Shown: in pieces, positions 30,267 to 64,000 of the stretch
How positions within the stretch are numbered: position 1 is the stretch's first letter
Layout: every line of letters begins with the position of its first letter
Source of the DNA: Paragordius varius
Taxonomy: Eukaryota > Animalia > Nematomorpha
DNA length: 64,000 nucleotides
Direction: 5' to 3'
NCBI GenBank assembly: GCA_964247055.1
Contig: OZ176056.1
Coordinates: 4,340,001-4,404,000, forward strand
The notes under the pieces: model-generated
Database searches by the model: none
The model's input: the letters and a program-made list of their open reading frames with translations, nothing else
Told to the model about the DNA's origin: nothing
Position numbers and translations under genes: made by a program

Positions 30267-30690
30267 CAGTAGCGTATGCAGTAAAAGATTGTTAGTGCAA
30301 AATAATCTTAACACAAAACAGGGGGACAATTTTCATATATTAATTATCACAGTCCTATTTATAAACATATCCATAATATAACAGTTGTTAAAATCCGTAA
30401 TATAACGATAAAGGATAATTAAATAGTTGTGTCGTACTGATGAGTGCTAACAAGCACGAAACTAGTCTGCGATTACTATTGATGAAGGGTTTCACATATC
30501 GTTTATAATTTCTATTTATAATTTCATTTAATTCTATTTAATTATCCTTTATCGTTATATTACGGATTTTAACAACTGTTATTACAAAACATAACCAATC
30601 CGTTCATTACCATTACAATATCCATAATATCCCCATGTTTTGTGTTCATTATTATTTTGCACTAACAATCTTTTACTGCATATGCTACTG
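30267..30690. mobile_element. TA-flanked Tc1/mariner-type MITE carrying the nested hammerhead fragment
   Basis: TIR CAGTAGCGTATGCAGTAAAAGATTGTTAGTGCAAAATAAT / ATTATTTTGCACTAACAATCTTTTACTGCATATGCTACTG, with TA on both sides. Confidence 0.8.
30422..30480 (+). ncRNA. Minimal type-I hammerhead ribozyme (Penelope/retrozyme-like)
   Basis: CTGATGA (30437-43), stem II GTGC-TAACAA-GCAC, GAAA, a 2-bp helix III within the palindrome ACTAGT, and GTC cleavage triplet ending at 30467. Helix I is GTCGTA/TGCGAT, extended by AATAG/CTATT. Confidence 0.85.
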
Positions 30691-40396: not shown

Positions 40397-42500
40397 ATCA
40401 TTATCATATGAATTCGACAACTGTCATTACAAAACATAATCAATTCGTCATTTACCATTACAAAAAATATTTATATTGAATTAGATAGACAGGCTCGAAA
40501 GTCGTAAATTTTAAAACTGCTCTAATTACTCATTTTCTTAAATAAACGGGAAAATTCGGAACTGAGTAATAAAAAAATTAAGAATGCATATTTTTCCTAA
40601 TTATTTGGCAAAATTTATTTAAAGGCATGGTGGAAACGGGATAAAAATGTTTTAAATAATATAAAAACTGTTTAATATTTAATGTGCTGACCATTTTTAT
40701 CATCTCAGAATTTTATTTAAAAAATTAATTTGTATTAAAATTTGGGTAAATTTTGTGAAAACACATTTATTCGACGCCGGTGATCGAAATTTTCTGTATC
40801 ATCGAATTATATAGAAATTATATTTGTTAACTTACAGTATATCGTAATTAACATCAATTAATTTGAAATATATATCCAGATGACATTTTTGATTTATATT
40901 TGCTATTATGATATCATGTTATCAGGACTTATTTTAAATTATTTTATATTAATTTTCATTATTTACTAAAACATTTTTATAACGGTTTGACCATTTATAT
41001 CACTAATTAGCTTCAGCAACACTTAGCCAAAATATAAATTTTTAACAAAAATAGGCTATTTTAACATTTATATATATCATTATAAGTTTAATAATTTAAG
41101 TATCTTGTTTCATTAATCATATTAAAAATAAAAGGATTTTTATTTAAATTTTTTTGATCGACTGGAAAATGGTTGTAGTCGAGTCGATTTTTACAGGTGC
41201 CATATATAAAACCTATCCATAATTTGAATATTTTTTTGAAATAAAAAAATTGTTTTATTATCAGTGCTGTTTTTACCATACGTACTAATGTAATTGATCT
41301 ATATGTTTATAAAGATGTAGAATGTCGGGCTTTAGACAATTATGGGAAAAACTTATATAACCATGCTTTCAAAGAGGGTGTTGTAATTCAAATGTACCTC
41401 GTGTGAAAGAGGAATTTAAATTAGTACCTTAATTCGACCCCGCGTGCGTGCTAATGGAAACGTTTTAATTAGAATCCAAAGAAATATTTTTCCATTCAAT
41501 TTTCATAAGTAGTCATTATATTTGCTCGTTTAGGTGCGTCCCGTTTTAAAATCCGAATTAGAAAAAAACATTGGTTTAGTTTTAATTATCCAGAAATTCT
41601 GTAGCTTATTCATTTTCAAAACCGTTATATTTATTTATAAATGTGTCGACGGCGGCATTGTCATTTTACTTCCCTCCTTAGTTCATCCCCATCCCCTAGC
41701 TGGAGTTCTTAAACAAATATAGGAAGATTAATTTTATAGTTTGCAACTCTTATCTCCACCCAGGCTTTTGAAAGAATACATATTGGCTTTGAAACGATTT
41801 TCTCAAAAACGTATAAAAAATAGTTTTAAGTTTCTATATTGTCTCCAAGGTGAAGAGCCAATCTTTTAGCCGTTCTAATCACGTTGTTCGAAAAAATAAA
41901 TAAATCTTGATTTCATCTATATTTTATTAAACGTATAAGGGCGTAGATATTATTATTAAACCTATTAATTTCTATTTTAAGGGTAAAGTGTCAAGCACTT
42001 TTTAGTGCGAAGGCCATGGCTCCACCTTTGAATACGCGAGATTATGTAAATTAAAAAAACTTTGTTATTACTACAGCATTATTTTCATACGATCCCTTTC
42101 TGGGCTGAAATCAAGGGGGAGTCATTTTTTAAACTCTGGGATTTGTTGCTAACCTGTGTAAATATATCCTAGATTGAACTTTTTGATCATTTTTTAGATT
42201 AAAATCTTGTATTGTAATATAATTATTATTTGAATATGAGCAATTTGAAAAGGCACATTTTTAATAGACAATAATAAAGGGATAGTTAGGATTCATTTTT
42301 AGTTGGCATTTAAGGCACTGAGGTATGACCCCTCGTGAGGCCAAACAGTTATTTATAAAATATCATTTTTTTATTGTAAAATTCTTTTTTGTTAAACTTA
42401 TGTTCTTCACCTTTTGCCCAGCGTTGCAAATAAATAAAATTGAATATTTTGAGTAAGATAAACTTTAATTTAAAATTATATTTGATTGGATTTGATAAAA

Positions 42501-44333
42501 ATGAAAATATTTCTTTCAATATTCATTGTATATGGTAATTTTTTGGACAAATTAACAATGTCAATAAATATTAATGTTAACCCATGTCAAATTTAAACTT
42601 TTGGTTTCTTAACAATTTATAAAATTTATTAAGTTTTAATTATTAAAAAGATAAATAATATAATATCAACTATCGGTCCGAAAAAACTAATTAATATCTA
42701 TCAGATTGGAATTAATATCTGTGTCTTAAATTTATTTATGCCAATTTTTAAATTTTTTATGTAAAATATAGGGATAGTTTTACACTTTAAAGCAAAAATC
42801 TATTTTTACAATATATATTGACTGCATTATTCAAAAAATTTAAAATCGCATTTATTAGATTTTATGCTAAACATTTGAAACATAGTTTATGACTAAAAAA
42901 TTGATATGCTTTTTGCCTACCATTTTTACACATTTTTTTTATTCATGGTTTATAATTAGCTTTGTAATTTAAATTTAAATTTAAATGCAATCGGAATTTC
43001 TGACCTTAAAACTTACCTCTAAATAATAAATGATTAATTATCTATCATAAATGTCGAAAACAGGCCCAATATCACATATAAAGGTAATGAAGCTTTATAT
43101 ATAAAATATAATTATATCAAAGGATTTGTATTAACTTTTGAATAAAAGGAATACAATTTAAAAATGATTTCTAATTTTTTTCATTTTAAATTGAAATAAA
43201 ATCCGAGGTTATCCCATTTTAATCTCATTATGCGGACAAATAAATTTTTTAAATGTTAAATTAATAATATATATTTTAAGGACATTCCATAGCTAATGGC
43301 TATTTTAACGACACAAATACGAATCCCAATCATATTCCAATTTGGCCAACTTTGAACCATAAAAGGCCAGGTAAGAGCATATATATATTTTTATAATTTG
43401 AATATGTATATATATGATTTCAAAGTCTAATTATATAAAATGAATTAAAAAGTATATAAAAACACTTCGTATCCAATAATTGTTAAACATCAGTCAGGGC
43501 AAGTTATCATTAAGCTTTCATAAAATTTACTACCAATGTATAGAAAGGGGTTTTATATAAAAAATGGTGACCAACATAAATGCCTTAGCGGGCCAAATTT
43601 CTAACTCGAAAGCCGCATTTCAAATATATATGAACAATCATTAATAATTGATAAATTCAAACATAAAACTGTAAAATATGTATACACAATATAACAATTT
43701 TTTAGACTTATTTTCATAAAATTATTTAAGAAATATCCATTTTACTAAGATTTTGTGAACATATTTTTGTTTATGAAGTTTCATACGCGGGTGGCGTGTT
43801 GGTCACCCTTAAACCTAACAAAAATAAAGCTATATTAATCAACAAAAATAGATTGGCAAAATATGGATAAAAGTATGGGTAATAGCCATGCCATTGGAAA
43901 TATTACTACGAACAGAATTGATGAAGTTTATGCAAAGCCTAAGGCATACAAATTTACCAAGAATGGTATCCCTGCTAAAATATAATTATTATTGATTCAA
44001 ATATTTTTTTAATTAAGTTTGTAATTACAATGATATTGTTGTTTTCTATAGATTTAGACTTAAAATTAAATAAATCTCGTACGGTTTTGGCAAGTAATAT
44101 TTATTTATATTATAAATTTTAACCAAATTATATCGTATAACCCTGATATAGAAGTCAAAACAAGATCAATTTCTGATTCCAACTTTGTTTTAAGGATTAA
44201 TGGTAAAACATTTTAATATGTACGTTTTTAGTGAGGGGTTAATTTTATATATATATATATATACTTTAATATGTAAGAGAAAAAATTTTTTTGTTACTCA
44301 TCCATTCAAAATTTAGATAGCTTCCAAAATTAG
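42501..44333 (+). CDS. Unknown secreted glycoprotein, paralogue A: N-terminal exons (and a possible short isoform ending DSFQN*)
   Basis: Exons 42501-42534, 43281-43370, 43852-43965, 44052-44093, 44152-44202 and a stop-containing exon 44317-44333. They give MKIFLSIFIVYGHSIANG/YFNDTNTNPNHIPIWPTLNHKRPDWQNMDKSMGNSHAIGNITTNRIDEVYAKPKAYKFTKNDLDLKLNKSRTVLAKVKTRSISDSNFVLRIN. The signal peptide is split over exons 1-2, all introns are phase 1, and differences from paralogue B are mostly synonymous. Confidence 0.8.
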
Positions 44334-45025
44334 ATTAACATTTCTAAATTTTTAAATGACGAACGCGTCTCTCAGATAGAGATAATATAGTGGAATGACA
44401 TTGGTAATTATATTCGGGTCCTACTATCCAAAAATTATGATTTAAAAAAATTTAGGTCTAAAAAAATTATTTATACCAACATTGAAACCTAGGTAAATGT
44501 ATCCTCCTATTGTTATTTTCAATAACTAAATAAATTAAACAGTCCTTAACTCGTATCTTTTAATCCTAACAACTTAATCTGCAATTTTAATATTATTTTG
44601 CCAGATCTCTACAATATAAAATAAATTCTTTGGATATGCTCAACATTAAATTATCTAATTTAAATATTAAAATTCGGTGCATATTGTTAAATATAGAAAT
44701 CTATATGAAACAATTATATAGTTATTCCAAAAATAATATATTTTTATTTGTAATTTTAGGTTAATGTCAAACATTAAGTGATATTATAATAATTTTTAAC
44801 TATATTTGCAACAATCAATTATCGTTTAAAGCATTTTTAAATTTTTGCCTCAAATGTGACATAATTAATTTAGGGGTCTAGGAAAGCTGGTTTTTTTACT
44901 TTCTTTAGACATCAAAATATTACATCAATATAAATGGTAACAAACTCAATTTCTTAAAATAGATTTTATAAAAAAATTTTAATATCATAAATGTTTATTA
45001 AGCCTTTACATTGCAATTATTTTAG

Positions 45026-48000
45026 ACACTAAAAATATCACGGCAGAGGTTGAAAAATGGATTCAGGATAAAAATATATCGGAAAATATTCCCGGTCAGC
45101 ATTTGTAATTTTTGTGATTCATTGGCCAAATTTATATAATTTACTAAACATTTTATCTCTGAATAATTTTAGAATTTAACTATACAAAGTTATTGATCAT
45201 GGCACCCAAAGATAAAACAAAAGGTTTATAAATTTTGTATAATGAATTCATGAAAAATGGAAATTCCTTAAAATTTAAATCTTTCTATTATTTTATACCA
45301 ATTCAGCCTTGTGATTTGTCCAATATAACTCGTATCTCTATAAATTTGTTAACAAAAAATAAATTAATATATTAATTTGATAAATTTATATCCGGGGTTT
45401 TCAAATGTCTTTGGATTATATAATTTTCATAGGTCTTATTATGATACCCATTTTTTCAATTTAGCCTTTGTTCAAAATTAAATGTTCCCTTAATTTTTTG
45501 CAATTCATTAGAAAGACAAAATATATATTTAAAGCAATTTCGTCCATATATATTTTTTAGAGATATCCGATATAGTGGCAAACATATCCCATGCTTCCAG
45601 TGTCAATGTTTCTCAAGATACAAATACGCATGGTTTATTGACAATCTATAATTATATATTTTATTTTTTATTTAATTATATTTTATCAAAAGTAGACGTT
45701 GTTTTAGGTAAATTTTGGTTATAACATGCTTAAACTTACTGATATAGTATTGCAAATCGGTAATTTCTTTCATTCACATATAGATCAATGGTGTTAAACA
45801 CGTGGCTTGCGATAAATTTCAAAACAAAATTTTACGAAATCTATTTTCTTCAAATTTTGAATTTCCTAAATTTGGCAATTAACTAACCAAAAAATGTTAA
45901 AATAAATAGTTGTTTTTGTCGACTTAAGTCTAAAAACCAATAAAATATTCGTTGATGCCCATATATTTTACAAATGCGGCCCGCCTGATTTTTTGTTTTT
46001 AAGTTCGGTCCCTGAAGCCATTTGTGCTAGACACCCCTGATATATAAATTGTGTGCTAAATTTCAAACCTTTTTAACGTTTTAAAACGCTAAATTTTGTG
46101 ATAGAATGCTTCTCGCAATTTTAAATTTAAAATGTAGATCTTGTAAGATATAAGAAATACAATTATAAAATATTCAGTACTCAATTTTATTATATATGTT
46201 TTATTTTTTTAGTTTAAGGTTTTTTACTTGATATTTTTTATAAAGTGGTACTAAGATTATATTAATAAATCTGGGTTCTAGGAGGTGTGTGAAACTCTAT
46301 ACACATAATTATAAAATAGCTATATATAAAATATTTTAGGTGGATACTCAGGTAAATAATATTGCAACCATATCGTTATTTATTATTTAACTATTCATTC
46401 ATTAATTTCTGTATATTGCTTTTGAAAGGTTATTTAAAATTCATACTGTTTTCATGATTGAAGATAGATATTAACATTTAATATACCATTTACAAGTTTA
46501 AATTCACCCTTGAACAATTCAATCGAACAATTCAAATTCTCCCTTGAACAATTCAAATTAACCCTAAAAAAGAGTTATCTGTTTTCGAAATAATATAACT
46601 CTTTATTAATATGAAATATATCTTTGTGGCATAGTTTACTATTTTTCAGTATTATTTTAATTTAAAACAAAATTTTATTTTTGAAAATATATAAAAATAT
46701 AGGTAATTTTTAATTTTAAAAAACATATAATTTATTTGAGGGTGAATTTAAATTGTTCGAGGGTCCATTTGAATTGTTTAAGGGTGAATATGAATTGTAA
46801 ATGGTATATTTACAATTTAACTTTTGCATATAATGTTAATATTTATTACCTAAGTAATATTAGAAAATATATCCTATAACCTATGATAAATTGCATATTT
46901 TTTTACAGTCATTGGCATGTTGTCTTGTGCAATAGGAGCAAAATTAGCTATGGATTCAACAATTACTACAATAAGTGCTCCAAGTATAAATCCTTTTACA
47001 GTAAAAATTAAAATTATACGATCAACATACGTAAAAATATAAAGACAAATATTTTTATATAAAAGACAAACCATACTTTTTGAAACCCTAACTTTTTCCT
47101 ATGTAAGTTATTTAGTTACAATAGTAAAATGATATTTTGTTGGTAACATATGTCTATCATGCCATTTTAATCAAGTAATATTTAAATATCAAGATAAGTG
47201 TCATTGTCTTTTAGAAAAAAATATTCGTCTTTATATTTTTATGTTTGTCCGTATACTTTCAATTACTGTAAAATCTATGCTGTACATAATTCTGAACCTA
47301 ATCAACACAGCAAATATTAGACGAAGAAATTTTAAGTTTTGTAAATTTATAAACTATATGAGAAAACCCTGTGAATATAATTAGTATGTCAGGCGTCGTT
47401 AAAACGCTTGCTTTTGTATGCGGACTCTAAGATCAATGGATAAATAAAATAAATGTATGGTTTTAAGATTTTAACGATTAGTATATTGATTGAAAGAAAT
47501 CTGTAACTTTTGTTTTGTTTAAAATTTTTTGCAGAGTTAAATTTAAAAAATGTTTAACATTTATTTATACATATTTTACACTTTTCAATCGGTTGATATA
47601 ATTTTTTATTCCGATATAATTATTTTGATTAATTTATTTTGGGTATTTATTATACATTTTGATGGTTGTTTATTTCACACTATAGTAGGGCAATTTGCAA
47701 CACAGTAGTTTAATATAAAAAAAGACAGGAAATAATTGTTTATTCAACAATTTGTTGTTTTTTCAATTAACTATTGTTTTGCGAATTGCCTTACTATATG
47801 GTGAAATAAGCAACCATTAAAATGCATACTGTATTATCGGTTATATTACATCTAATGTTTTCTAAGCTAGTCATAATCAGTAAAATCCCAAATATATCGG
47901 TGAAAAATTTACATTACAAAGTGATGTTATTTAAGTTAAAAAATTTAAAACATTTGGCCTAAATTCGATTAATATAGTTTATGCCATTATGTTTTTTGCT

Positions 48001-50565
48001 AAGAAAGGAAAACAAAATTTTTCTAAAATATATATATATTTTAAAAATTCGAAAAAAAAATTATGGTTCAAATGTTTAAAGCTAAAGAAACCTAAAGTAG
48101 TTAGAGAATAAATAAAAACTCGCATAGAAGTAATTTTTAGGGCCATGTGAATGAGCCAATTTTCAAGCTCATTCACCTGGATTATGGATTATGAGGAAGC
48201 ATATGTTTGAGGGAGGTGATTGAGTTTTTGAGGTGGGAGTTTTGAAAATTTTTATCAGTATGATGGATAACAGTTCTACACGCGATTTAGGTTATTTTGT
48301 TCAAATAATTTATAGATATCCATTCATCTTTATGATCCGTAAATAAATTCAGCAATGACAAAAAGCTTAAGGTCTGGGAGGCTTTAGCCGAAGAAATGAT
48401 CAATATTTAAATTGGGCAATCACAAAAACATTAGAATCGAGATTGAAAAGAACGGAAGACAAAATGCTATATAATGATAAATTCTACCATTGAACTAGAA
48501 CCAATAACAGCTTTTATCAGAATAGACTTCGGTATTTTGGACACATAGACAGATCCAGTATAGACTCACCTGCAAAAGAAATTCTTGATTTACAGATCCC
48601 TGCCCTTAACCGAAAAGGGAGGTCTAAACAACTGACTCAAATCATAGAACAAGACTTTAAATTCCTGAACATACCTCGAAACGCAACAAATGATAGAGAC
48701 ATATATCGTAAATTAATCCTTGGAATCCCAATAACTGGGCCAAACCAATAATACATTTATAAAATATATTCATTTATTGTGTAAAAATAAATTATAAATA
48801 AAATTATGTCAAATTAATTCTTTTTTCCGATCTACTCCTGTCTGATGGCTATTCAATATAGGTGTTGTCTGCTCTTCTGATAAAAGTTTGCTAACTCATT
48901 TTCGTCAATGTTACCTATCGCTTTTATAGAAATATGTATTACCGAATACTCCGATTATCATTAGTAAGTAGCAGAGTTTCATGTCTAAAATAAACCAAAT
49001 TTAAAATACTCGATAGTATTCCTGATTATTTTACCATTTAGAATGGTTTCTTCTAAATTCTTGAAAAAACATATCAGTAGTTATACAATGATTTTCTAAA
49101 TATTCAGTAAACTTGATTATAAACTCGAACTAACTACCATTTCTTGCCTAAATATATAAAAATAAATCATCTAACCTTTAGTACGCATTTGCCCGAAAAA
49201 TATTTTTTAATCCATGTCCAAAATTTCCAAAACCTACCATATACATATATTAAATATACTTTATTAAGGCATATACAGTTTGCAGATTCCAAAAATTCTT
49301 CCTAGTTCTCGAGATATCGGCTTTTGTAACAAGCTTAATCCTGAAAAAACCAGGATTAAAAATTCCTCCATCTCAACAGGATGAGCGAGGCTCATTCACC
49401 TGGATCATTAAAAGTGGTGAATGAGCCTGTTCAATTGGCTCATTCACATGGGCCTTAATGTAAAAGGTTACCTGTGAAATTATTTTTTATCCGCCATATT
49501 GGAATCATCACACAATCTTTTATTATTTTAGTTTTTTGCGCTTCTAAGACATACCATTAACAATTCAAATTGACCCTTAAACAATTCAAATTGACCCTTA
49601 TACAATTCATCACCCTTGAACAATTCAAATGTACCCTCGAATAATTTAAATTTACCCTAAAAGAAATTATGTGTTTAAAATAAAAATTACATATTTCTTT
49701 ATATATTTAATAAAAATACGTTTAAAATTAAATTGAAAAAAAAACTAAGCCACATATATGTTACTGATGATATATATTAGCCCGAAAACACATAATTTAT
49801 TTTTAGGGTGAATTTGAATTGTTGAAGATGGAATATATATTAGCACATCTCATATTTTAAGTTAAAAGCGGAAAATAATGATGATGTTCAATATTTTTCA
49901 ATTTTTCAAAGTGCTCATAAAAAATTCTATTGTAACTGATTGGACTCGTTAGGGTGCATATATCTTTCCAAAGATTAGATATGTTTGTAAACAACATATT
50001 TTTAATTTGTCAACAAAATACATTAAAAAATATATAAACTAAAGCGTTTTTAGTTATCATTTTTTGCAATTTTAGGTTCAATAGCACTGAACACAATTGG
50101 TTCACAAGTACCGTCATCCGTTTCATCACACAGTTAGTCAACATTTTGTAACGTAGTACAAATTTTAAATAAAACAAAATAACCAAATTTACAGTACTGG
50201 AAAGAGTAATCTTTTCTCGGGAGTCGTAACTTTCCAAAATAAAATATTTAGGCCGCAAATTTTGTTAAACTAATGCTTTTATATCATATGTAGTATGTTG
50301 GAGTGTTGAAATATATTCAACTTTTTAAATTAATTTCAACCAGCTTGGCAGGTGCCAAAAGGCTATAAATTTAGCTATTTATCAAAAATAGGTTTTGTTA
50401 ATCGTCCCTCATTCATCCAAAATTTTTTTTGATTAGCGACAGAAAAGACCTATTCTTTTGTGAAGAGGAATATAGAAATTAGGTTCCTATGGTATTTATC
50501 ATGATAATTAAATTTTACTGAAACGTTTACGACTGGTTGGTTAAAAATAGCAGTTTCTGGCAAAG

Positions 50566-50621
<56 letters not shown>

Positions 50622-51349
50622 AAAATTGAGATTATACGGACAAAACGTAAAAATATAAAAACATTTTTTTTTCAAAAGACAACCACTTTAACCTTAATTT
50701 ATCTAATAAAAAATAATCACATTCGTTAAATACATATTTGATTATGTTACCAATATAAATCTCTATTTCATACTTTACAGTTTAAAACAAAGAATCATAT
50801 TTAAGCAACTTAACATTCAAAATATGGTTGGTTGTCTTTTAGAAAATAATATTTGTCTTTATAATATTAAGTTTTGTCCGTATAATTTCAATTTGTACAA
50901 TATATATATAATAATATAAAATTGCAGTTAACATATAAATAAAATTTATTTTGCATTTTATTATCTTATAATGTATTTCCAGGGATTTACTAATATATTT
51001 ATTTTCTTAACATAATCACACCGTTTTAAAAATTATCTCTTAAAAAGAGTGTTTTATTGTTATATAATTTTAGGTCAATCTTTACCTTCGTTTTCATCGT
51101 CCAATTCGCTTCCGTCTTTACGAGAAACTGGGTTAACTGGATCCATACCCAATTTGGGGGCAACAAATATGGCCGGTTTAGTTGGTTCCATAGCCAGTTT
51201 GGGGGGATCAATTAGTGTGGGCGCTATTTCGCAAGCCTCGTCTTTAGGGTTAAGTTCGTTTGAAACTCAATCTGCAAACACGCTTGATTTTGATTCCCTA
51301 GAATCAGTCTCAGAATCAGATGTTAGTGAAATCACGGAAAATACGGATG
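45026..51349 (+). CDS. Middle exons of the micro-exon locus (phase 1-1, lengths divisible by 3)
   Basis: Well supported: 45026-45094 (69 nt), 45173-45223 (51), 45561-45632 (72), 50076-50132 (57), 51074-51349 (276, Ser/Gly-rich then acidic). Tentative: 45696-45707 (12), 45748-45759 (12), 45910-45927 (18), 46340-46351 (12), 46909-46983 (75), 50483-50491 (9). Connectivity is inferred only. Confidence 0.6.
46481..46809. mobile_element. Foldback-type MITE family 1 (type copy)
   Basis: TIR ATATACCATTTACAA / TTGTAAATGGTATAT. The arms are built from tandem 21-bp AATTCAAATTCACCCTTGAAC units. Confidence 0.8.
47660..47817. repeat. Short hairpin element (MITE-like)
   Basis: ATGGTTGTTTATTTCACACTATAGTAGGGCAATTTGCAA / TTGCGAATTGCCTTACTATATGGTGAAATAAGCAACCAT. 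Confidence 0.6.
48140..49454 (+). mobile_element. PIF/Harbinger-type non-autonomous element with a MADF-like remnant
   Basis: TIRs GGGCCATGTGAATGAGCCAAT / ATTGGCTCATTCACATGGGCC flanked by TTA on both sides, with internal repeats of CTCATTCACCTGGAT. Remnant peptide NKFSNDKKLKVWEALAEEM at about 48.34-48.40 kb resembles a MADF domain. Confidence 0.7.
48430..48755 (+). mobile_element. 5'-truncated RTE-like LINE 3' end nested in the Harbinger-type element
   Basis: QNRLRYFGHIDRSSIDSPAKEILDLQIPALNRKGRSKQLTQIIEQDFKFLNIPRNATNDRDIYRKLI matches the RLRWxGHVxR...GRP...W...DR..WR C-terminus of RTE-clade ORFs. It ends in a TAATAA tail. Confidence 0.8.
49551..49836. mobile_element. MITE family 1 copy
   Basis: ATACCATTAACAATTCAAATTGACCCTT... 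with five units on the left arm. Confidence 0.7.
50567..50618. repeat. (TA)26 microsatellite
   Basis: Read directly from the sequence. Confidence 0.95.
50619..50897. mobile_element. MITE family 3 (TATACGGACAAAAC...AAAAGACAACC arms) inserted at a (TA)n tract
   Basis: Inverted arms at 50619-50690 and 50825-50897. Related remnants lie at about 4010, 13620-13820, 16100-16330, 22030-22320 and 47020-47285. Confidence 0.65.
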
Positions 51350-51949
51350 GTAAGGATAAAGAATGTCATTCTATTTTTTTCCTCATAAACGATCTGAAAT
51401 AACATTATTATTCAACTTAGAGTACTTGTAAACGTGATTATTGTACTTAAATTTACTTATAACTTACTTTTAGACCTAAAATAAGTATATGGTAGCAGAT
51501 TGATGGTTTAAAATAATTTTATTATCCTTTAATTACATTTCGGCTGTTATGGAGTATGTATTTTATAAAAAAATAATAATTTAAATTTATTTGAATGACT
51601 AAAACTGCCTGTATTCAAATCTGCATTAAAACCTACACAATTATTAAATTGATTAATTATTGCTGAGAGATTTTTCTCAGTTGTTTAAGAGATGAATCCT
51701 CCTTCAAGCTAGTAACTCAAATTTACAAATATATAAAAACAAAAGATAAATATTATACTTCATAATTTGCCAATTCTGGGATGTGTCTGTCTGTTTGATC
51801 TATTAGATTTTATATACCTGGCCTATAAAGAAGTTTTTACCAATTTTCGGTAAATACATACGTAATTTAAAATATTAATTTAAATTTCATTAAAAATATT
51901 GTACATAGGCTTCTACACATTTCCCCATCTCTTAGGTAATATATGAATG

Positions 51950-52790
51950 CTACTCAAAAACTGATTGTCTTTTGCAAAAAACCATTCGTCATTTCATTTT
52001 CTAACTTGATTGAAGTGCTGCTCTACGACGGTGTCCCATTGATGCGAAGTTTATTAATCAAATGGCGCCAGGCCAGGAGAGTTTAATTGATGCGAAAAAT
52101 TCCCTTCAAAGCGATTTTGAGGTGTCTTTCACTGGTTTTGTAGTGTGCGACGAAGCGTAGAACAAATTTAAGAGAATTCAAAAAGTTTATAATACACAAT
52201 CCCGCTCTTTTCCGACACAGAGCATGGTTTTCCTGCTGAAGTGATTTGGCCTGTGGATACAGCTTGACAAAACAAAAGCCACGACCTTTCCGCTTTGGTT
52301 TTATAAAATAAAGCTATTACTCGTCGCCTGTCTTAATTTGATTCAAAAATAATTTCTTTAAGACGTTTTGAAGAAGGATTTCACAAGTAATTTAACGATT
52401 TTTATTTAATGTTGATTGATTTATGTAGGACCATCGTGTTTGTTGGTCTTTCCCATTGGTTGTAGAAATCTATTGATTGTTTTTTGTGATACATGTAATG
52501 TTTCTGCCAATTGTTGTAAAGTGTAATTGGGTCTTCATTAACTTGCAATTTAGCTTCGCAGTTATGTGGTCCACCAGAGTGCCTTAAGTCTTCACATAAA
52601 ATCACATTACAATATTTCAAAATATGTTTCACATGTGTGATAGATCATGTTAACCATATATTTCTACCAGCAAACTATAATAAACAGCCTTTTTCTGGAA
52701 ATGCGTGCCGCAAATGTTCCTTTCGAACACAAAGTTCGAAGTAATTACTGAATGATAAAATAAGTCGCTAAATTTTGATAAACTCTTGTC
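51950..52790 (-). mobile_element. Mariner (IS630-Tc1-mariner) transposase relic inside an intron of the micro-exon locus
   Basis: Frame-broken motifs on the minus strand: EDLRHSGGP (compare ED..RSGRP), FLNQIKTGDE...KPKRK (compare FL.RIVTGDEKW...NPKRK), KTMLC...GIVYYKL and NSPGLAPFD (compare YSPDLAPSD). TIRs were not resolved. Confidence 0.8.
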
Positions 52791-53446
52791 GTTTAATGTT
52801 AGATGAATAAAAATTGCATTAATCGTCTGCTTACTTTTCTATCTTCTCTCAATTAAACCGGTAACTTAGGAATACTTTTGGAAGGGGGAATAAAGATTAG
52901 AATCTCAAAATGAGTACCCACTATATTAGGATATAATTAACTAATAACTAGTTACAACAGCTGACTATAACTTGAACTGAAAGATTTTTATATTTAAGGA
53001 GATTTAGCTTTTTTAACTGTTTAGTTTTTAACATGCGTAAAAGCAAATTTTTGGGTTGATATTAGTTTAAATATAAAATTGCTAATTTTTAGTAAATAAT
53101 TTCGTTAATTGCAGCATATAATTTCAATAATTATACATGCCCACCTAGAAAAATTTTGTTTGGTTTTAATTATAAATACATAAATGTTATTCAATAATAA
53201 TTATGATAGTAAATAAATTTTAAACTTTATAAATTTCAAATTTTGCATTGAATTATTTAAAATTTAGGTTTTGCTGTTTTAAATAAGCATGAGATAAGGG
53301 AGGGATTAAAATTTTAGCTTATTAAGCTATATTAAATTTTGACCGAAGCCTTTCTGATAATATAGAATGATGAATAATCTAAAAAATAATTATTAGTTGA
53401 ATCTTGCATAAATTACCAATTGAACACTAGATATATATAAATCTAG

Positions 53447-56400
53447 TTTCCGTATCGGAACCACCACATGTTTGTAAGTTATTTTTGAAATTAAAATGAA
53501 AACTATCAAGGATTATATTAAAATTTATTGTATGCTAATCGCTCTAGCCATTTTTATTTATTTTAAATAAACTTAGAAATAATTATATTATATAGTACAA
53601 TTACGAAGGGAGATTGAAGCTTTATGTTAGTTATTAAGTTTTATTAATTTTTAAAGCAAATTATATTGGAGCCAGTTGTAAGATATATATTAATATTTAT
53701 TTTAGTGAATAAATCTTTCCAGAAATTAGTTTTCTGATTTTTAATAAATCCTCTTTTATTAGATCATAGTATGATACGTAATGCCCTAACACGTGGTTAC
53801 AACGGTAATTAAAATTAATTATGAAATTTTATCTAAATCTTTTTATTAAATATTAAATTAATATTAATATTATATATAGCTATATTTAATCAAGGTAAAA
53901 CCGCTATACTTAACATTTTTAATGCATGCCTACTTATTAGCAATCCAATCACCCTATGAAAGTAATTGTATATTAAATAAAATTAATTTTTATAATTTGT
54001 TAACAAAATGTAATTGGTTACATTTATTTTTTTGTAGTTTTTCAACAACACGGTACGTTTTAGTTCGATAGAGTTAATTAAAATTAAACATTCAATATAA
54101 AATAAAAGACAATTTTTTTTGAAAAGCCAACCATACTTTTTTAAACAACTTTACTTAATTAAATGTAACTCATCGTTTTGGAATGTAAACTAGGGGATAA
54201 ATATGTAAATTAATGCATTCAATTATTACAAATAAATTTGTGATTATATAATTTAAAGTTTTATCCTTTCAAATCAAATATTTATTTTTTAGTTTAAAAA
54301 TTTTATCTCTATAATTTAAATTATTACTGTAATTTTAAATACTCGTTTAATTATTAAATTTTATCATATTAACGCGATAATAACTTTATTAATTTCTTAA
54401 ATAAATATACCATTTACAGTTCAATTCAATACACCCTTAAATAATTCAAATATACTTTCGACCATTTCAAATTACCCTTAATCAATTTAAATTCACCCTA
54501 AAAATAAATTATGTGTTTTCGAACTAATATTACTCATTATTAATATGAATTATATCTTTATGGCATAGTTTATTATTTTTTCAGTATTATTATAATTTAA
54601 AACAAAATTTTATTTATTAAAAATATAAAAATATAGGTAATTTTTAATCTATAAATATATGAGTTATTTGAGGGCGAATTTGAATTATAAATGGTATATT
54701 TCAGATAATACATTTGATATTACAGTAATAGATATACTTTGCTAGAAAGTTAATTATTGCCAAATAGTAAATACAACAAAGGATGTTATTGGCTTATAGT
54801 TAATTTTTTCACTTTTTAAAATTATTAACCAATAATACTGCCCTTTGTTGTATTTACTATTTGGCAATAATCAATAACTTTCTAGCAATGTATACTTACT
54901 CATACTGAAATTTTAAATGTATAATACCATATCTGGCTTTAATTACGAGATATATATAAAAAACCTTGCATAATAAATTTGGATTTAATATTTTTCAAAA
55001 AAATGTATTAAACCGAGGTAGGACGATAATTTTAAGTACTTGTTCATTTCTAAGACTCGCATTTTTTAATTTTAAGTGATTTAATTATTATTATTGTAAT
55101 AAACTTGCTTACCATAAAGAGTGTGTTTTTGTTTGTCTTTAAATTTAGCCAACTGAAAACAAAATATTATAAAAGTCATTTGATCTCAAATATGTAAAAT
55201 ATTGAGCAAATAATTAAATTAATGCTTCTGAGTACGGTAAAATTTGACTCTCAAAACGCTTTTTAGATTATCAGCCTAATGTTTATCAGTTGTTGTTGAT
55301 CAATAATCGTTTCTATCAAAATAAGTTTGACCAATATAAAATTTGGCCTAACATTACGCCTAAAATTTTAAGTAGTTAGCTAAAAGGTAAATAGACGTGA
55401 TTATAACGGGTATTATGTAAAACGTAAGTCAATATAAATTGTATTTTGTTATTAGCCAAAATTAAAAATCCGATTAGGTCGAATTATATAATCGCCAAAA
55501 CAAATAATTTTATTTTGTATAAATAATTAAGATGCTTCTAAATATTAATTGGCATTTATTTGGGCATCATAATGAGTTATAAAAATCAAACTTATTATTT
55601 TACTATAGTTTGATTGCAATCATTTAAATTTAGCAATGATTGTATTTGTTTGAAACATGAATTTTCGATTACTACTGATAATCTTTGAAATTTAAAAATA
55701 AAAAAATGGTTGTTCTACACTCACAATTATAAATCAGAGGGTTTTTTTCATCGCTTATAACCGCTTAAAATAATTGGCTTTTATAAATTATTTTTTCCCA
55801 TCTGATTTTATTCGTTTGCCAAAAACATATAAATATTTAAAATACAATCTAGGTGTGAGGGATATGCTGGAACGTATGATTTTTTCATTATTCATTATGT
55901 ACCCAAAATTTAATTTTATGTGTCCAAATTTTGCACATATTAATATTTTAATCGGATTTTACAAGTCCGACTTTTCTTTTATACAATTAATATGTCGACT
56001 ATACTCCCCCTCCCTATAGCCTCTAATTGTGGAAAACATGGGTGATATCCACATCATGCCTTTTTTTAGATATGTAAAATTATTTTTTTTGAAATTTGAA
56101 TTTGTAAATTACAAATATTTCTTTTATTAATTTTGACTAATTTTAAGGATTTTCTACTCCTAGTAAGTTTGTAAGAAGTTATGCTAGTGTGATTATAGCT
56201 CAAAAATTGGGGACTGATATAAAAATCAAAAAATGCATGGATTACCGCGATGTAATTGGTTTATAGGCAATATTTAATTGAAAAATTTATTATAATAGAT
56301 CTTACTTTATATATTAACTTATGAATAATATTATTTAAAAAACATAGTTTATCGTCACTTAAGTAAAATTTTTAATTACATACTACCGCCAATATATTTA

Positions 56401-56981
56401 ATATATTCTCTACATACTACACATATATCTAATTTCAGACACCTTTCAAAGTAAAATATTGTTTTTTATGTGACATTAATATCTTGTCAATTATAGAAGT
56501 TTCCGATGTCGCAGAAGGTTAACAAACTTTATATTTAACTTTTCAGATTTAGTAAGTTTGTCTGAGGGTAAGTGTTTTTGTGCCTATAAATATCATATTA
56601 ATAAATAAGAAATGCAATCTTTCTTGGAAGGTACGATTGATAGATATTATAAAATATAGAGGCTAAACATTTCTCCCAGGGTAAAATTATTAAAAAAAAC
56701 TCATTTTAAACATATAATGAATTTATTATAGCTGAGCCTGAATCATTGTCAGGTAAAATTACTCAAACTAATCAGTAATTTTTTTAGAATTAAAGGATTA
56801 CCTTACAGGTTGGTTTATGATTTCTTTGATAAATTTTTTTATTATATTAATATAATAGAGCGCATTAGTGTCTTTATGAGTATGCAGCATTATCCACAAT
56901 ATTTGAATAATTAAATTGTATAGCTCGTAACAATTTCGGTATCAATCAAATTTTATACATTTAGCGGAAATGGAAAATTAA
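53447..56981 (+). CDS. 3' micro-exon arrays of the locus, ending ...TRNNFAEMEN*
   Basis: Exons 53447-53473 (27), 53596-53625 (30), 53657-53677 (21), 53763-53804 (42), 53880-53894 (15), 53941-53961 (21), 54038-54052 (15), 55267-55371 (105), 55395-55424 (30), 55853-55873 (21), 56439-56450 (12), seven 21-nt exons at 56497-56879, 56924-56938 (15), and terminal exon 56965-56981. All are AG/GT bounded and stop-free in phase 1. AATAAA follows at 57031. Confidence 0.8.
54405..54699. mobile_element. MITE family 1 copy
   Basis: Same TIRs and internal sequence as 46481-46809. Confidence 0.8.
54733..54894. repeat. Short near-perfect hairpin element (MITE-like)
   Basis: TTGCTAGAAAGTT...TTGCCAAATAGTAAATACAACAAAGG / CCTTTGTTGTATTTACTATTTGGCAA...AACTTTCTAGCAA. 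Confidence 0.65.
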
Positions 56982-57300
56982 TATGAACTCCTACTACTAA
57001 ATATTTTTTTCAATATTTATATTCACTGCCAATAAAAATAAATTCAATTTTGATTTTTATTTGTATTATTTGAACTTAATTATACAAAATTTAAATATCC
57101 AAATGATTGATCACAATTTATTTGGACTCTATTTAAATTATGAAGATTAAATTTCAATATGATTTATCTTAATTATTTTATCACACAGTGGTGCAATTTA
57201 ATATTTTAATTATGAAACATATACAAATTCATAGAATGTTTGTATCGAATTGATAAATGCGGTAAAAATACTGATAAAAAGTTATGTTAATATTGATATT

Positions 57301-59519: not shown

Positions 59520-62500
59520 AGTGTCGAAGAATTTTTGGAATATTTTCACAGATATTTTGGCATAATTATATAATTTTATTATATAGACGCATAAATTTAA
59601 ATTGTGACCGTTTCCTTTAGTATTTTTTCAAAATCCTAACATAAATTGAGTAGGTATTTAGAACCCCAATTTGAATCGAAACATTAATTTAAAAAATTTG
59701 GGTAAATTTTGTGAATGCAATGATAGAAATTTTCAGTATCATCGAACTATATAGAAAGTATATTTATTATACAGTAAATCGTAATTAGCATCAATTAATT
59801 TGAAATGACCTAAATGACATTTTTAATTTTGGAAAATAGTTACAATGATATCATGTCATCAGAATTTAGATTTTTTTATTATATACTATAACATTTTTTT
59901 ACCTTTTTGACCATTAAAACCATAAAGTATGCTTCAAAGTTTTGCGAATATTTCAATTTAGAAGAAAAATAAGCATTTTTCTATTTAAACTTATATTTTA
60001 AATATATTTTATTTTTTAGAGTAGTTATTATATATCCTTTTTATTTATCATTAAAAATAAGATTTTTATTAAATGTTTTTTGATTGAGTGGAAAATGGTT
60101 GCAATCGAGTCAATTTTTACCGAACTACAGTGGCATATATCAAACCTATCCGTATAATTATAACATTTTTTGAAATATAGCGTAAAATTTGTTCTTTTAT
60201 CAGTGGTGTTTTTCATACGCTCTTATGTAATTGATCTAATGGTTATAAAGATGTAGAATGTCGGTTTTTAGACAATTGAATAAAAAAAACATATATGACT
60301 ATATTAAAGAGGGTGTTTATAATATAATATGCCGAGAGTTTAAGAGAATTTTTTTAATTAGTCCCTTAATTCGACCCTGCCTGCATGTAAATGGGCACGT
60401 TTTAATTAGAATCCAAAGAAATATTTTCCGTTCTTAAATCTCATAAGCAGTCATATTTATATTTGCCCTTTTAGGTGCGTCCCGATATGAATCCTGGCAT
60501 AGATATAATTATCCAGAAAACTTGTAGCCCATTCATTTGCAAAACCATTATATATATTTGTAAATGAATCGACGGCGGCATTGTCATTTACTTCCCTACT
60601 TAGTTCATCATTCCCTAGAAACTGAAGCTCTTAAATAAAATATCTTTTATCTTCACCCAGGTTAAATAAATGGCTCTAATAAATTCTTGAAAGAGGTGTA
60701 GGCTTTTTGAATTTACAAGAATTATATAGTAGGCATTGTCATTTTTATTTTACCCTTATTTACTGTCCATTCCACAGAAAATGGAGCTCTTAAATAAATT
60801 TATAACTTCATTTATAGTTTGTCACTATTAGCCACACAGCCTTTTGTCCAATAATTTCTAGTATTGTGTCCAAGGTGAAAAGCCACTCACATAAGCGCTC
60901 GTATTTAGCCCTATCATATTTTTTAATAACAACTAACCCAGATTTTAGCTATTTTTCAGTAAACGCATTAGGGCATGGTTATCAGTTTTGGACCTATTAA
61001 TTTCTAATCTGAGGGTATATCTGGCACCTTTTTTGTCCTTTGACAAGAATTCCACCTTTAAATACGCGAGATGTGAATTACAGCTTTATTTTTACCCAAC
61101 TCCTTTCTTACAAGTTTTCACACCTTTCGGGCCTAAAAAACATGGAAGAGTTATTTTTAACTCTCGGATTGATTGTAAACCTGTGTAAATGTATCATAGT
61201 ATGAAAGTTTTGACCATTTTTTGAATAATTAATAGTTAAATATGAATAATTTGAAAAAGCGCAGTTTCAATACACAATAATAAAGGTATAGTTAAAAAAT
61301 CATTTTTCGTGAATATTTATATTTTGTCATTCACTTTATCTGTATTCTTGTTAATTTCATTTCTATTTGGCCGATTACCAATTATGTTTAACATTGAGGC
61401 ACGACCCCTCGTGAGGTCAAAATATTTATAAATATCATATTTTTTAGTGTAATTTTTTTGAAACTTAGGTTGTTCACCTTTTACCCAGCAATGCAACAAA
61501 TTAAATTTAATATCTATATATATTATACATTGAGTAAGATAAATTTTAATTTAATATTTTTATTGATTGAATTAAAATGAAAATATTTTTTTTAATATTC
61601 ATTGTATATGGTAATTTTTTGGACAAATTAACAATGTTACTAAAATGTTACAAGCCAAATTTAAACTTTGGTTTCTGAATGATTTATAATTTTTATTGCT
61701 AAGTCATAATATATTAGGATGTTAAAGGATACTAAAAATATAATATTATAACTTTTGGTTTTAAATAAACAAATTATTATCTAATTGGAAGCTTAATACT
61801 GTATTTAAATTTATTTATGCCAATTTTTAAAATTTTATATAATATATGGTACACTTTAAACAAAATTTAAATATTTTTACAATATATATTGACTGCACTA
61901 TTCAAATAATTTATCATCGCATTCTCATCTCAAACTTTGTGTCCTCGAATGTTTTAATATGTCGAACATTTGACATATTTTATGACTATCCTTTTGAATA
62001 AAGGAATACAATTTAAAAATGATCTAATTTTTCAATTAAAACTAAAATAAAATCCGAAGTTATCCCATTTATAATTTGATAATGCGGACAAAATGTTAAA
62101 TTAAAATATATATTTTAAGGACATTCCATAGCCAATGGCTATTTTAACGACGAAAATACGAACAATCATATTCCGATTTGGCCAACTTTAAACCATAAAA
62201 ATCCAGGTAAGAACATATATCTTATATATATATATATATAATATAACCATTAATAATAGAATAAATTTTAAACATTAAACTTTATGCACAATATAATAAT
62301 TTCTTATGTTTTGCCCCTTTTATAGACTTATTTCCTATAAACTATGATTTTATAAACATTTTTGTCAATTATGAAGTTTCATATTTTTTGGGTGGCGTGT
62401 TAGTCACCCTTGAACCTTACTAAGCTATATTAATCAACACCAATAGATTGGCAAAATATGGATAAAAGTATGGGTAATAGCCATGCCATTGGAAATATCA

Positions 62501-64000
62501 CAACGAACCGAATTGATGAAGTTTATTCAAAGCCTAAGGCATACAAATTTACTAAGAACGGTTTCCCTACTATAATATAATTATTATTGATCCAATAATT
62601 TTTAATTATGTATGCACCATGATTTTTTCTTCAGATTTAGACTCAAAATTAAATAAATCTCGTACGGTTTTGGCAAGTATTATTTATTAATATAACAAAT
62701 TTTAACCAAATTATATCGTACCTGATATAGAGGTGAAAACACGATCAATTCCTGATTCCAACTTTATTTTAAAGATTAATGGTAAAATATTTTAATATAC
62801 ACGCTTTGTTAGTATTATTATGTATATATATACTTTAATATTTCTTAGAAAAAATCATTTTGTTACTTATCTGTTCAAAATTTAGATAGCTTCCAAAATT
62901 AAATTAACATTTTTAATTTTTGAATAAAGCACCTCTCAGATAAGCATATTAATAACATCCGTATTTATTTCAGGTCCTACTATCCAAAAAATTAAAAAAA
63001 AAATTTGATTATGAAAATTAAAACCCAAGTAAATGGAGAATCCTACTATTGTTAGTTTTAATGAGTAAATAAATTAAACAGTCATTAACTAGCATATATT
63101 AAAATTAAAATTATTTTGTCTCGTTTGGCAGTAAAATGGTATTTTGCTAGAAAATCAAATTTAATTTACAATTTTAATTTAAATTATATTGCCCTATCTC
63201 TACAATATTAAATAAATTCTTAACAATACCCAGAAATGAATCATCTAATTTGAATATTTACTTTTTTGTAAAACATAAAAATCTATATGATACAATATAT
63301 GGAAGAATAATAATTATTTTTTTAATATTAATTTTTGTCTTGAACAACAGGTAAATTCCAAACAATACATGATAACCATAATGATTATATAGCATATAGT
63401 ATATTTGCAACGATCATTATCGTTTAAAGCATTTTTTAAAATTTTACCTCAAATGTGACATAACTGACTTAGAGGTCAAGGAAAACTGGTTTTTTACTTC
63501 CTTTAGACATCAAAATATTACATCAATATAAGTGGTAACAAAAACAAAATCCTTAAAAATAAATTTGTTCATAGCGATGTCGATTTTGTGTTTTATATAA
63601 AAGATTTTAACATTATAAATGTTAATTAAGCTTATAATTATTTTAGATACTAAAGATATCACGGCAGAGGTTGAAAAATGGATTCAGGACAAAAATATAT
63701 CCGAAAATATTCCCGGTCAGCACTTATAATTTTTGTGATACAATTGGCTAAATTCATATGATATGCTAATTTTTTACTTTGATTGATTTTAGAATTCAAC
63801 TATACAAAGTTATTGGTTATGGCACCCAAAGATAAAACAAAAGGTTTATAATAATATTGTTAAATTAGCTAAAAAAGCAATCAATTTTTTTTTGAAACAA
63901 GGAAATTTATATTAGATTATTTATCACCAATTCAGCTCGTATTTATCTAGTTTAACTCTACTCTATAAATATGTTAACAATGAATAAATATAAATAAAAA
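59520..64000 (+). repeat. Segmental duplication, copy B (runs off the window)
   Basis: Collinear with about 40080-45370; it lacks the roughly 430-bp segment that carries the hammerhead in copy A. Confidence 0.9.
61577..63843 (+). CDS. Paralogue B of the secreted micro-exon gene (continues beyond the window)
   Basis: Exons 61577-61610, 62120-62206, 62447-62560, 62635-62676, 62731-62781, stop exon 62886-62902, then 63647-63715 and 63793-63843. Splice sites and phases are the same as in copy A; begins MKIFFLIFIVYGHSIANGYFNDENTNNHIPIWPTLNHKNP. Confidence 0.8.

Follow-up and report, generated by a model that had tools for sequence, protein, structure and literature searches.

Seven consecutive putative exons on the plus strand of AT-rich animal DNA, each exactly 21 nt long and each encoding one heptad, raise the question of whether exons of so small a size are real, to which gene they belong and what kind of protein would be assembled one heptad at a time. 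The window, that is the whole 64-kb stretch of DNA that was analysed, has a GC content of 0.22-0.35 per 2-kb bin and of ~0.26 overall, which is compatible with the value of 26.9% given for a hairworm genome (bioRxiv 10.1101/2023.06.26.546503).

The exon-intron structure proposed by the first-pass annotation can be read directly from the sequence. All seven exons lie at the coordinates given there, with AG and GT bounds, a length of 21 nt and phase 1-1, preceded by a 12-nt exon and followed by a 15-nt exon and a terminal exon that ends in TAA. The nine introns between the 12-nt exon and the terminal exon measure 46, 29, 42, 29, 51, 35, 50, 44 and 26 nt, all of them within the range of 26-51 nt that had been claimed. 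Joining in phase 1 reproduces exactly the peptide predicted, HTFQ/KVSDVAE/DLVSLSE/EMQSFLE/EAKHFSQ/AEPESLS/ELKDYLT/ERISVFM/TRNNF/AEMEN, followed by the stop codon. To this set a further 21-nt exon is added here, so that the 3' part of the locus comprises the following features:

55853-55873, plus strand: eighth 21-nt exon, additional to the seven described earlier, with an AG acceptor, a GTATGA donor, an exon score of 11.6 and the same heptad pattern.
56439-56450, plus strand: 12-nt exon, AG/GT bounded, encoding 4 residues that separate the first heptad from the second.
56497-56879, plus strand: array of seven 21-nt exons (56497-517, 56547-567, 56610-630, 56660-680, 56732-752, 56788-808 and 56859-879), each with AG upstream and GT downstream, in phase 1.
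56924-56938, plus strand: 15-nt penultimate exon, AG/GT bounded and in frame.
56965-57060, plus strand: terminal exon with 14 coding nt and TAA at 56979-981, then a short 3' UTR, as read from the sequence.

Exons and introns differ markedly in base composition, with a GC content of 0.33-0.52 in the exons as compared to 0.12-0.25 in the introns; the introns that separate the 21-nt exons of the array are 29-51 nt long with a GC content of 0.12-0.21. The same contrast is seen at the newly added exon 55853-55873 (GC 0.52 vs 0.11 in its flanks), which is located 565 nt upstream of the 12-nt exon 56439-450. Its last base, a C, opens the His codon that continues into the 12-nt exon, and hence the tail comprises eight heptads, the first of them followed by an insert of 4 residues. 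One heptad together with this insert amounts to 11 residues, a hendecad-like stutter that is also compatible with a helix. Two AATAAA motifs in the 3' UTR, at 57031-036 and 57037-042, point to a polyadenylation site. When the 21-nt exons are compared position by position, they share a nucleotide pattern of 7.6 identical positions out of 21, as against 5.45 for shuffled sequences, and this could reflect either an ancient shared origin or a shared constraint.

At the protein level, hydrophobic residues occupy exon positions 2, 5 and 6 in 5/8, 7/8 and 5/8 of the eight 21-nt exons, respectively, while acidic residues are found at positions 1, 4 and 7 in 5/8, 4/8 and 4/8 of them. The hydrophobic moment, calculated for the 49 residues of the seven array exons, is maximal at 102.9 degrees, which corresponds to exactly 3.5 residues per period, with a z value of 3.07 that is reached by 0.3% of shuffles, and the same residues give no periodicity signal at beta-strand angles. 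The amphipathic pattern described earlier, with hydrophobic residues at positions 2 and 5/6 and an acidic face, is thus borne out by the position counts as well as by the moment. The tail is acidic (16 D+E vs 6 K+R), and this net charge argues against a simple parallel homodimer. A proline is present in the sixth of the seven 21-nt exons and probably splits the tail into a helix of ~38 residues and another of ~26. The amphipathic helix that had been proposed therefore stands as an acidic, heptad-periodic segment, as indicated by the moment peak, but probably not as one continuous helix, since the proline suggests two.

Concerning the behaviour of these exons in splicing, retention of any of the nine short introns would bring in an in-frame stop codon within 1-15 codons and hence truncate the tail. 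None of the 55 conceivable exon-exon joins creates a stop codon, which upholds the earlier contention that skipping of any exon keeps the frame and makes the heptad cassettes formally interchangeable. Furthermore, six consecutive exons end in G, so that skipping among them leaves the junction residue unchanged. Such features could be taken to favour the view, put forward in the first-pass annotation, that 21-nt exons are skipped singly or in sets to yield a ladder of tails differing by whole heptads, as in the micro-exon genes (MEGs) of schistosomes, the more so as flatworm micro-exon genes are described as making protein variants through exon skipping (PMC7653826). However, the terminal G is equally explained as part of the donor consensus, and splice-site scores are similar across the exons with no evident weak cassette exon among them. 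In the chicken BG genes, variation of the tail has been documented as intron read-through and as exon number differing between genes, with no skipping ladder (PMC5938342). Moreover, a transcript of any isoform was not found: five RNA-labelled runs with the same species label contained none of the sampled words from the region or from the terminal exon, two of them yielded nothing that aligned to the region, and a search restricted to the terminal exon matched DNA runs only. Exon skipping as a designed source of variation is hence regarded as unlikely, and the array is preferably read as a constitutive part of its gene.

As to which gene this is, the array appears not to be a unit of its own but to form the C-terminal tail of a much larger gene, given the phase-1 exons upstream of it, an upstream exon cluster that ends at a donor without a stop codon, and further exons supported by a tandem paralogue. 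Upstream exons were found by a scan for phase-1 symmetric exons followed by chaining, which extended the model back to ~43.3 kb, where exon 2 begins at 43281. The main features of this upstream part and of the paralogue are:

42501-42534, plus strand: probable first coding exon, opening with ATG and reading MKIFLSIFIVY, with a phase-1 end at a GTAAT donor; it is an island of 93-100% identity to the paralogue with a poorly conserved flank.
43281-45223, plus strand: N-terminal exons 43281-370, 43852-965, 44058-093, 44152-202, 45026-094 and 45173-223, phase 1-1, based on islands of 90-100% identity to the paralogue (62.1-63.9 kb) and on exon scores.
49279-49416, plus strand: tentative exon with a 16-residue hydrophobic stretch (which includes a Glu) followed by KK; AG/GT bounded, open, phase 1-1, GC 0.38.
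51074-51349, plus strand: largest exon of the provisional model, 276 nt, Ser-rich, acidic and of low complexity, with the best exon score in the locus.
53447-54052, plus strand: upstream micro-exon cluster with exons of 27, 30, 21, 42, 15, 21 and 15 nt, all phase 1-1, obtained by the phase-1 exon scan and chaining.
60061-63851, plus strand: 5' part of the tandem paralogue, which runs off the end of the window, identified by tblastx and MAFFT alignment against 41135-45231.

The resulting provisional model contains 32 exons and 533 codons over 14.5 kb, is open from the ATG to the TAA and is nearly all in phase 1-1, its exon list between 45.3 and 53.4 kb being provisional. Micro-exons account for 23 of the 32 exons of this provisional model, with 17 of them consecutive from 53447 to 56938. 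In pairwise alignment, the introns of the two paralogues are 50-80% identical with many indels, and the predicted exons emerge as islands of 90-100% identity amid these divergent introns, which validates the six N-terminal exons. The short hydrophobic N-terminus encoded by the first exon is signal-peptide-like as judged by eye and is conserved in the paralogue. The exons that follow are rich in N-X-S/T sequons, and over the whole model the N-terminal 255 residues contain 10 sequons against an expectation of 4.0, while the C-terminal 263 contain none against an expectation of 3.0. The sequon-bearing and the sequon-free half lie on either side of the 16-residue hydrophobic stretch with its KK, all 10 sequons preceding this stretch. 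A scan of hydrophobic windows is dominated by AT-rich noise and yields one weak span candidate in a plausible exon, so that the stretch in 49279-49416 is at best a weak candidate for a membrane span. Taken together, these features hint at a type-I membrane protein whose ectodomain is glycosylated and whose cytoplasmic tail is acidic; a span at this place would mean that the product is bound to the membrane and not secreted.

Because the cluster 53447-54052 ends at a strong GTACGT donor without a stop codon, the gene must continue downstream, and the link across the 1.8-kb intron 54053-55852 is drawn from three features, namely the matching phase, the absent stop codon and the exon pattern. The array is hence most likely the 3' end of a micro-exon gene of ~32 exons that extends from 42501 to 56981. 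Within the introns of this model a probable transposon remnant is present at ~51.95-52.9 kb and a small hairpin element at 54733-54894. Elsewhere in the window, fragments of Trypsin, Snf7 and COX15 were noted, and a search of the window against Rfam at gathering thresholds gave no match.

An in-frame ATG at 55865, within the exon 55853-55873, leads to the alternative that an independent small gene is transcribed from just upstream of this codon and encodes a cytosolic, acidic helical peptide of ~66 residues unrelated to the upstream exons, and the 1.8-kb gap with its small hairpin element ahead of the ATG would suit such a separate gene. This is nevertheless improbable, since the exon that carries the ATG is exactly 21 nt long from a good AG acceptor, the heptad pattern is already present in the three codons preceding the ATG, and the upstream cluster ends in phase 1 with a strong donor and no stop codon. 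The array as the 3' end of the large gene thus remains the preferred assignment.

Whether the exons are coding can be addressed using the natural variation of this organism. Variants were taken from alternative haplotypes in the organism's own DNA runs from two samples, where the haplotypes appear as assembly-graph bubbles of approximately equal depth with common start and end points, and differ from the window by ~5-8% substitutions in addition to indels. Four other runs, considered as those of related species on account of containing 6-17% of the sampled words, were rejected, as they yielded 151-nt, depth-2 contigs identical to the window (carry-over) and spurious matches of ~37 nt. The counts given below refer to the best-supported variants listed, beyond which lie a further 39 substitutions and 21 indels.

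Among the variants listed, nine are exonic substitutions, and seven of these nine fall at third codon positions of the spliced frame. Six of the nine listed are synonymous in the spliced frame, compared with one in each of the other two frames; by chance a synonymous share of ~19% would be expected, or 27% with transition bias (P ~0.003-0.016). Two of the synonymous variants, 56440 and 56498, fall in codons that are divided between two exons and arise only through the proposed joins: the first of them (C>T) is located in the codon split over the 55873/56439 join, and the second in that split over the 56450/56497 join. The three replacements listed (V to I, S to N and H to Q) occur at exon positions 3 and 4, off the hydrophobic seam. 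All indels listed within the array are intronic, and in the haplotype of the second sample covering 56410-56631, for which the list of gap letters is complete, all nine are intronic, so that introns differ in length between haplotypes and the exons keep their 12 or 21 nt. No variant of a splice dinucleotide is found among those listed. In neither sample could the other haplotype be aligned, at a likeness of 80%, over the segment 56820-56920, which holds the last 21-nt exon. The pattern of the listed variants indicates that the exons are very probably coding and under purifying selection.

The same data bear on the possibility of a decaying or silent copy, in which the structure is real and the expression has been lost from a redundant member of a tandem family. 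The locus is indeed tandemly duplicated, the RNA-labelled runs with the same species label provide no match, and a haplotype segment that covers the last 21-nt exon has diverged too far for alignment. On the other side, the frame and all splice dinucleotides are intact in the reference, the splice dinucleotides are untouched by the listed variants, and the variants listed are biased towards synonymous changes. A silent copy is hence held to be improbable.

Regular spacing of this kind was also compared with what the window as a whole and simulated sequences contain. Units of AG-(21 nt)-GT spaced by 20-80 nt form a longest run of 7 on the plus strand of the 64-kb window and of 2 on the other strand, and for other unit lengths of 12-39 nt, on either strand of this window, the longest run is at most 4; no other run of 7 occurs in the window. 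Among 150 windows simulated with a first-order Markov model under the open-frame condition, the longest run was 2 in 116 instances, 3 in 31 and 4 in the remaining 3. Although AG and GT are common and AG-21-GT sites number 122 on the plus strand of the window, an arrangement of AG and GT by chance in AT-rich DNA is effectively refuted by these run statistics and the variant pattern, with the GC contrast, the heptad periodicity and the codon-position bias of the variants all agreeing against it, and it retains next to no probability.

That the array is not a recent tandem repeat, as had been stated, is sustained at the DNA level: Tandem Repeats Finder reports no repeat within it, and no second copy of the 1.3-kb array region is present in the window, which together rule out a DNA-level tandem-repeat origin. 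Given the run statistics, the GC contrast between exons and introns and the way in which the variants fall in the spliced frame, the earlier claim of coding micro-exons in a locus resembling micro-exon genes is well founded, and the 21-nt exons are, with considerable confidence, genuine spliced coding exons.

Searches for relatives of the encoded protein were uniformly negative within their scope. Neither the spliced 69-residue tail nor the 116-residue ORF over the largest exon 51074-51349 has a database match among candidates of 0.55-1.75 times the query length, Pfam and PDB return only sub-threshold matches to unrelated helical segments, and hence no homology to a named MEG family was detected for either query. 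In the three larger exons tested, Pfam does not identify an Ig domain. Furthermore, neither "micro-exon" nor "microexon" was found in the hairworm literature searched.

The explanation that we consider reasonably likely as a whole is that the array encodes a constitutively included helical tail through which a secreted or membrane glycoprotein interacts. It would represent the constitutive 3' end of a large micro-exon gene that has been duplicated in tandem and whose product has a sequon-rich N-terminal half that follows a signal-peptide-like exon and is presumably extracellular and glycosylated. The protein may cross the membrane once, and the last ~70 residues of its acidic region would be encoded as one heptad per 21-nt exon. 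This tail most likely folds as an amphipathic alpha-helix, or as two helices parted by the proline of the sixth exon, and the hydrophobic seam formed by exon positions 2, 5 and 6 would drive self-association or the binding of a partner, as is thought for the tail of BG proteins. We propose that exon length is fixed at 21 nt because a departure from it would displace the frame and the register of the helix alike, while the introns would be free to vary in length. The array probably arose from an old duplication of a unit made of a 21-nt exon and a short intron, whose copies would since have diverged beyond recognition at the DNA level. Splicing, helix formation, oligomerisation, membrane topology and the origin by duplication are thereby all inferred from genomic sequence. 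A bolder extension, which we regard as doubtful, would be that a non-flatworm parasite lineage, possibly of hairworms, has independently evolved MEGs in the style of flatworms together with a tail in the style of BG, that the cassette of seven or eight exons serves as the C-terminal module of a multigene family distributed over many chromosomes, and that skipping or intron retention tunes the tail by heptads between life stages.

Micro-exon genes are regarded as peculiar to parasitic flatworms, and 21-nt heptad exons in series as peculiar to the avian BG and vertebrate butyrophilin family. A gene that unites both designs in an unrelated AT-rich invertebrate would be a clear instance of convergent gene architecture, and would support the selection of exon length to match the period of a secondary structure. 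Since ORF-based and most automatic annotation overlooks such genes, the gene set may lack a whole family of proteins that are probably secreted or exposed at the surface.

Exons whose length follows a structural period are known from the fibrillar collagens, in which each exon of the triple helix, classically 54 bp long, comprises an integral number of 9-bp Gly-X-Y units. The array resembles this arrangement in that exon length is tied to the period of a secondary-structure element that repeats and exons become interchangeable units of structure. It differs from collagen, where the repeat is a triplet of 9 nt, the structure is a triple helix, the exons are much larger and the phase is 0.

Closer similarities exist with the micro-exon genes of flatworms, for which micro-exons are operationally defined as shorter than 70 nt and divisible by three in length (Olson et al. 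2020, PMC7653826). The internal exons of the array span, with 12 nt, seven times 21 nt and 15 nt, are all below 70 nt and divisible by three, and the locus as a whole, in a model whose middle part is provisional, falls under the micro-exon-gene definition applied to Hymenolepis, Echinococcus and Schistosoma (PMC7653826). In common with flatworm MEGs, this gene has a long series of symmetric exons divisible by three, a first exon that is signal-peptide-like (here by eye) and a tandem expansion of the family; it is without homologues outside its lineage, here among candidates of 0.55-1.75 times the query length, and is overlooked by ORF-based views. Schistosome MEGs are described as having exons of 3-81 bp and introns of up to 5 kb (bioRxiv 10.1101/2023.06.21.545858). 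In contrast to this mixture of sizes, 21 nt dominates here and the introns of the array are confined to 26-51 nt. In addition, the product is unlike those of schistosome MEGs in being large, with ~530 residues, and several ordinary exons of 90-276 nt are included. The genome, with a GC content of 26%, is also unlikely to be that of a flatworm.

The chicken BG genes are a closer structural precedent than the schistosome micro-exon genes. Their cytoplasmic coiled-coil tail is encoded by runs of 21-nt exons in which the first codon is split 1+2, and the length of this tail depends on how many such exons a given gene has and on read-through of introns (PMC5938342). Thus, the novelty implied for the principle of one exon encoding one heptad was overstated, as BG tails built from 21-nt exons with a 1+2 split are already known (PMC5938342). 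The correspondence extends to runs of exons of exactly 21 nt in phase 1 with the 1+2 split and one heptad per exon (PMC5938342), to the location at the 3' end of a gene whose product bears a signal peptide (here signal-peptide-like by eye), to acidic patches in the tail and to membership in a tandemly duplicated gene family. Intron read-through truncates the BG tail, and each short intron here carries an in-frame stop codon within 1-15 codons. Several differences are nonetheless evident: BG genes contain 27-38 such exons as compared to 7-8 here, no Ig-V domain was found in the three larger exons tested and no clear membrane span in the present gene, and there is no detectable sequence similarity between the two. 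BG is a vertebrate gene, whereas the array belongs to an AT-rich invertebrate genome. In BG the hydrophobic a/d residues are encoded by codons 4 and 7, while in the array they are at codons 2 and 5/6, and this difference in register points to an independent origin. The likeness to BG hence points to convergence, and neither to homology nor to membership in that family. What is new is a one-heptad-per-exon design that would have arisen independently within a micro-exon gene of an unrelated invertebrate.

A tandem duplication at 41135-45231 and 60061-63851 covers the 5' portion of the micro-exon gene, a provisional model of 32 exons at 42501-56981 on the plus strand, and the second copy extends past the end of the window. 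Between the two copies exon identity amounts to 90-100% and intron identity to 50-80%, with numerous indels in the introns. Two elements are located within introns of this gene:

51950-52900, GC-richer intronic stretch holding a 76-codon ORF at 52402-52632 on the minus strand
54733-54894, MITE-like inverted repeat (small hairpin element) within the 1.8-kb intron that precedes the 21-nt exons

The first of these is probably a transposon remnant. In the hairpin, the two arm segments measure 26 and 33 nt and are 88-97% complementary.

Using the DNA runs of P. varius itself (X2 and X3, two samples), the region around the 21-nt exons at 55800-57100 was found to be highly polymorphic. At least three haplotypes, differing by ~5-8% in substitutions and additionally by indels, are present across the two samples and show up as bubbles of equal depth, and at 56820-56920 the other haplotypes of both samples are too diverged for alignment. 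Contigs of 151 nt at depth 2, identical to the window at 55800-57100, were also observed in runs labelled as four other organisms (X5-X8), and these matches look like carry-over among co-sequenced libraries rather than shared sequence.

Upstream of the micro-exon locus, three exon-sized ORFs with Pfam matches are ordinary animal genes, all encoded on the minus strand:

6383-6844, minus strand, Trypsin
14116-14433, minus strand, Snf7 (ESCRT-III)
36319-36681, minus strand, COX15

Across the whole window (1-64000) zero Rfam matches were obtained at gathering thresholds, and hence the candidate hammerhead ribozyme at 30375-30620 falls below the curated score.

The acidic C-terminal half of the predicted micro-exon protein contains repeated Ser-x-Glu motifs, which occur in the Ser-rich large exon (51074-51349), in the first exon of the upstream micro-exon cluster (53447-53473) and in two of the 21-nt heptad exons. 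Ser-x-Glu is the consensus of secretory-pathway casein kinases, and the acidic C-terminal half, if extracellular, could be that of a phosphoprotein.
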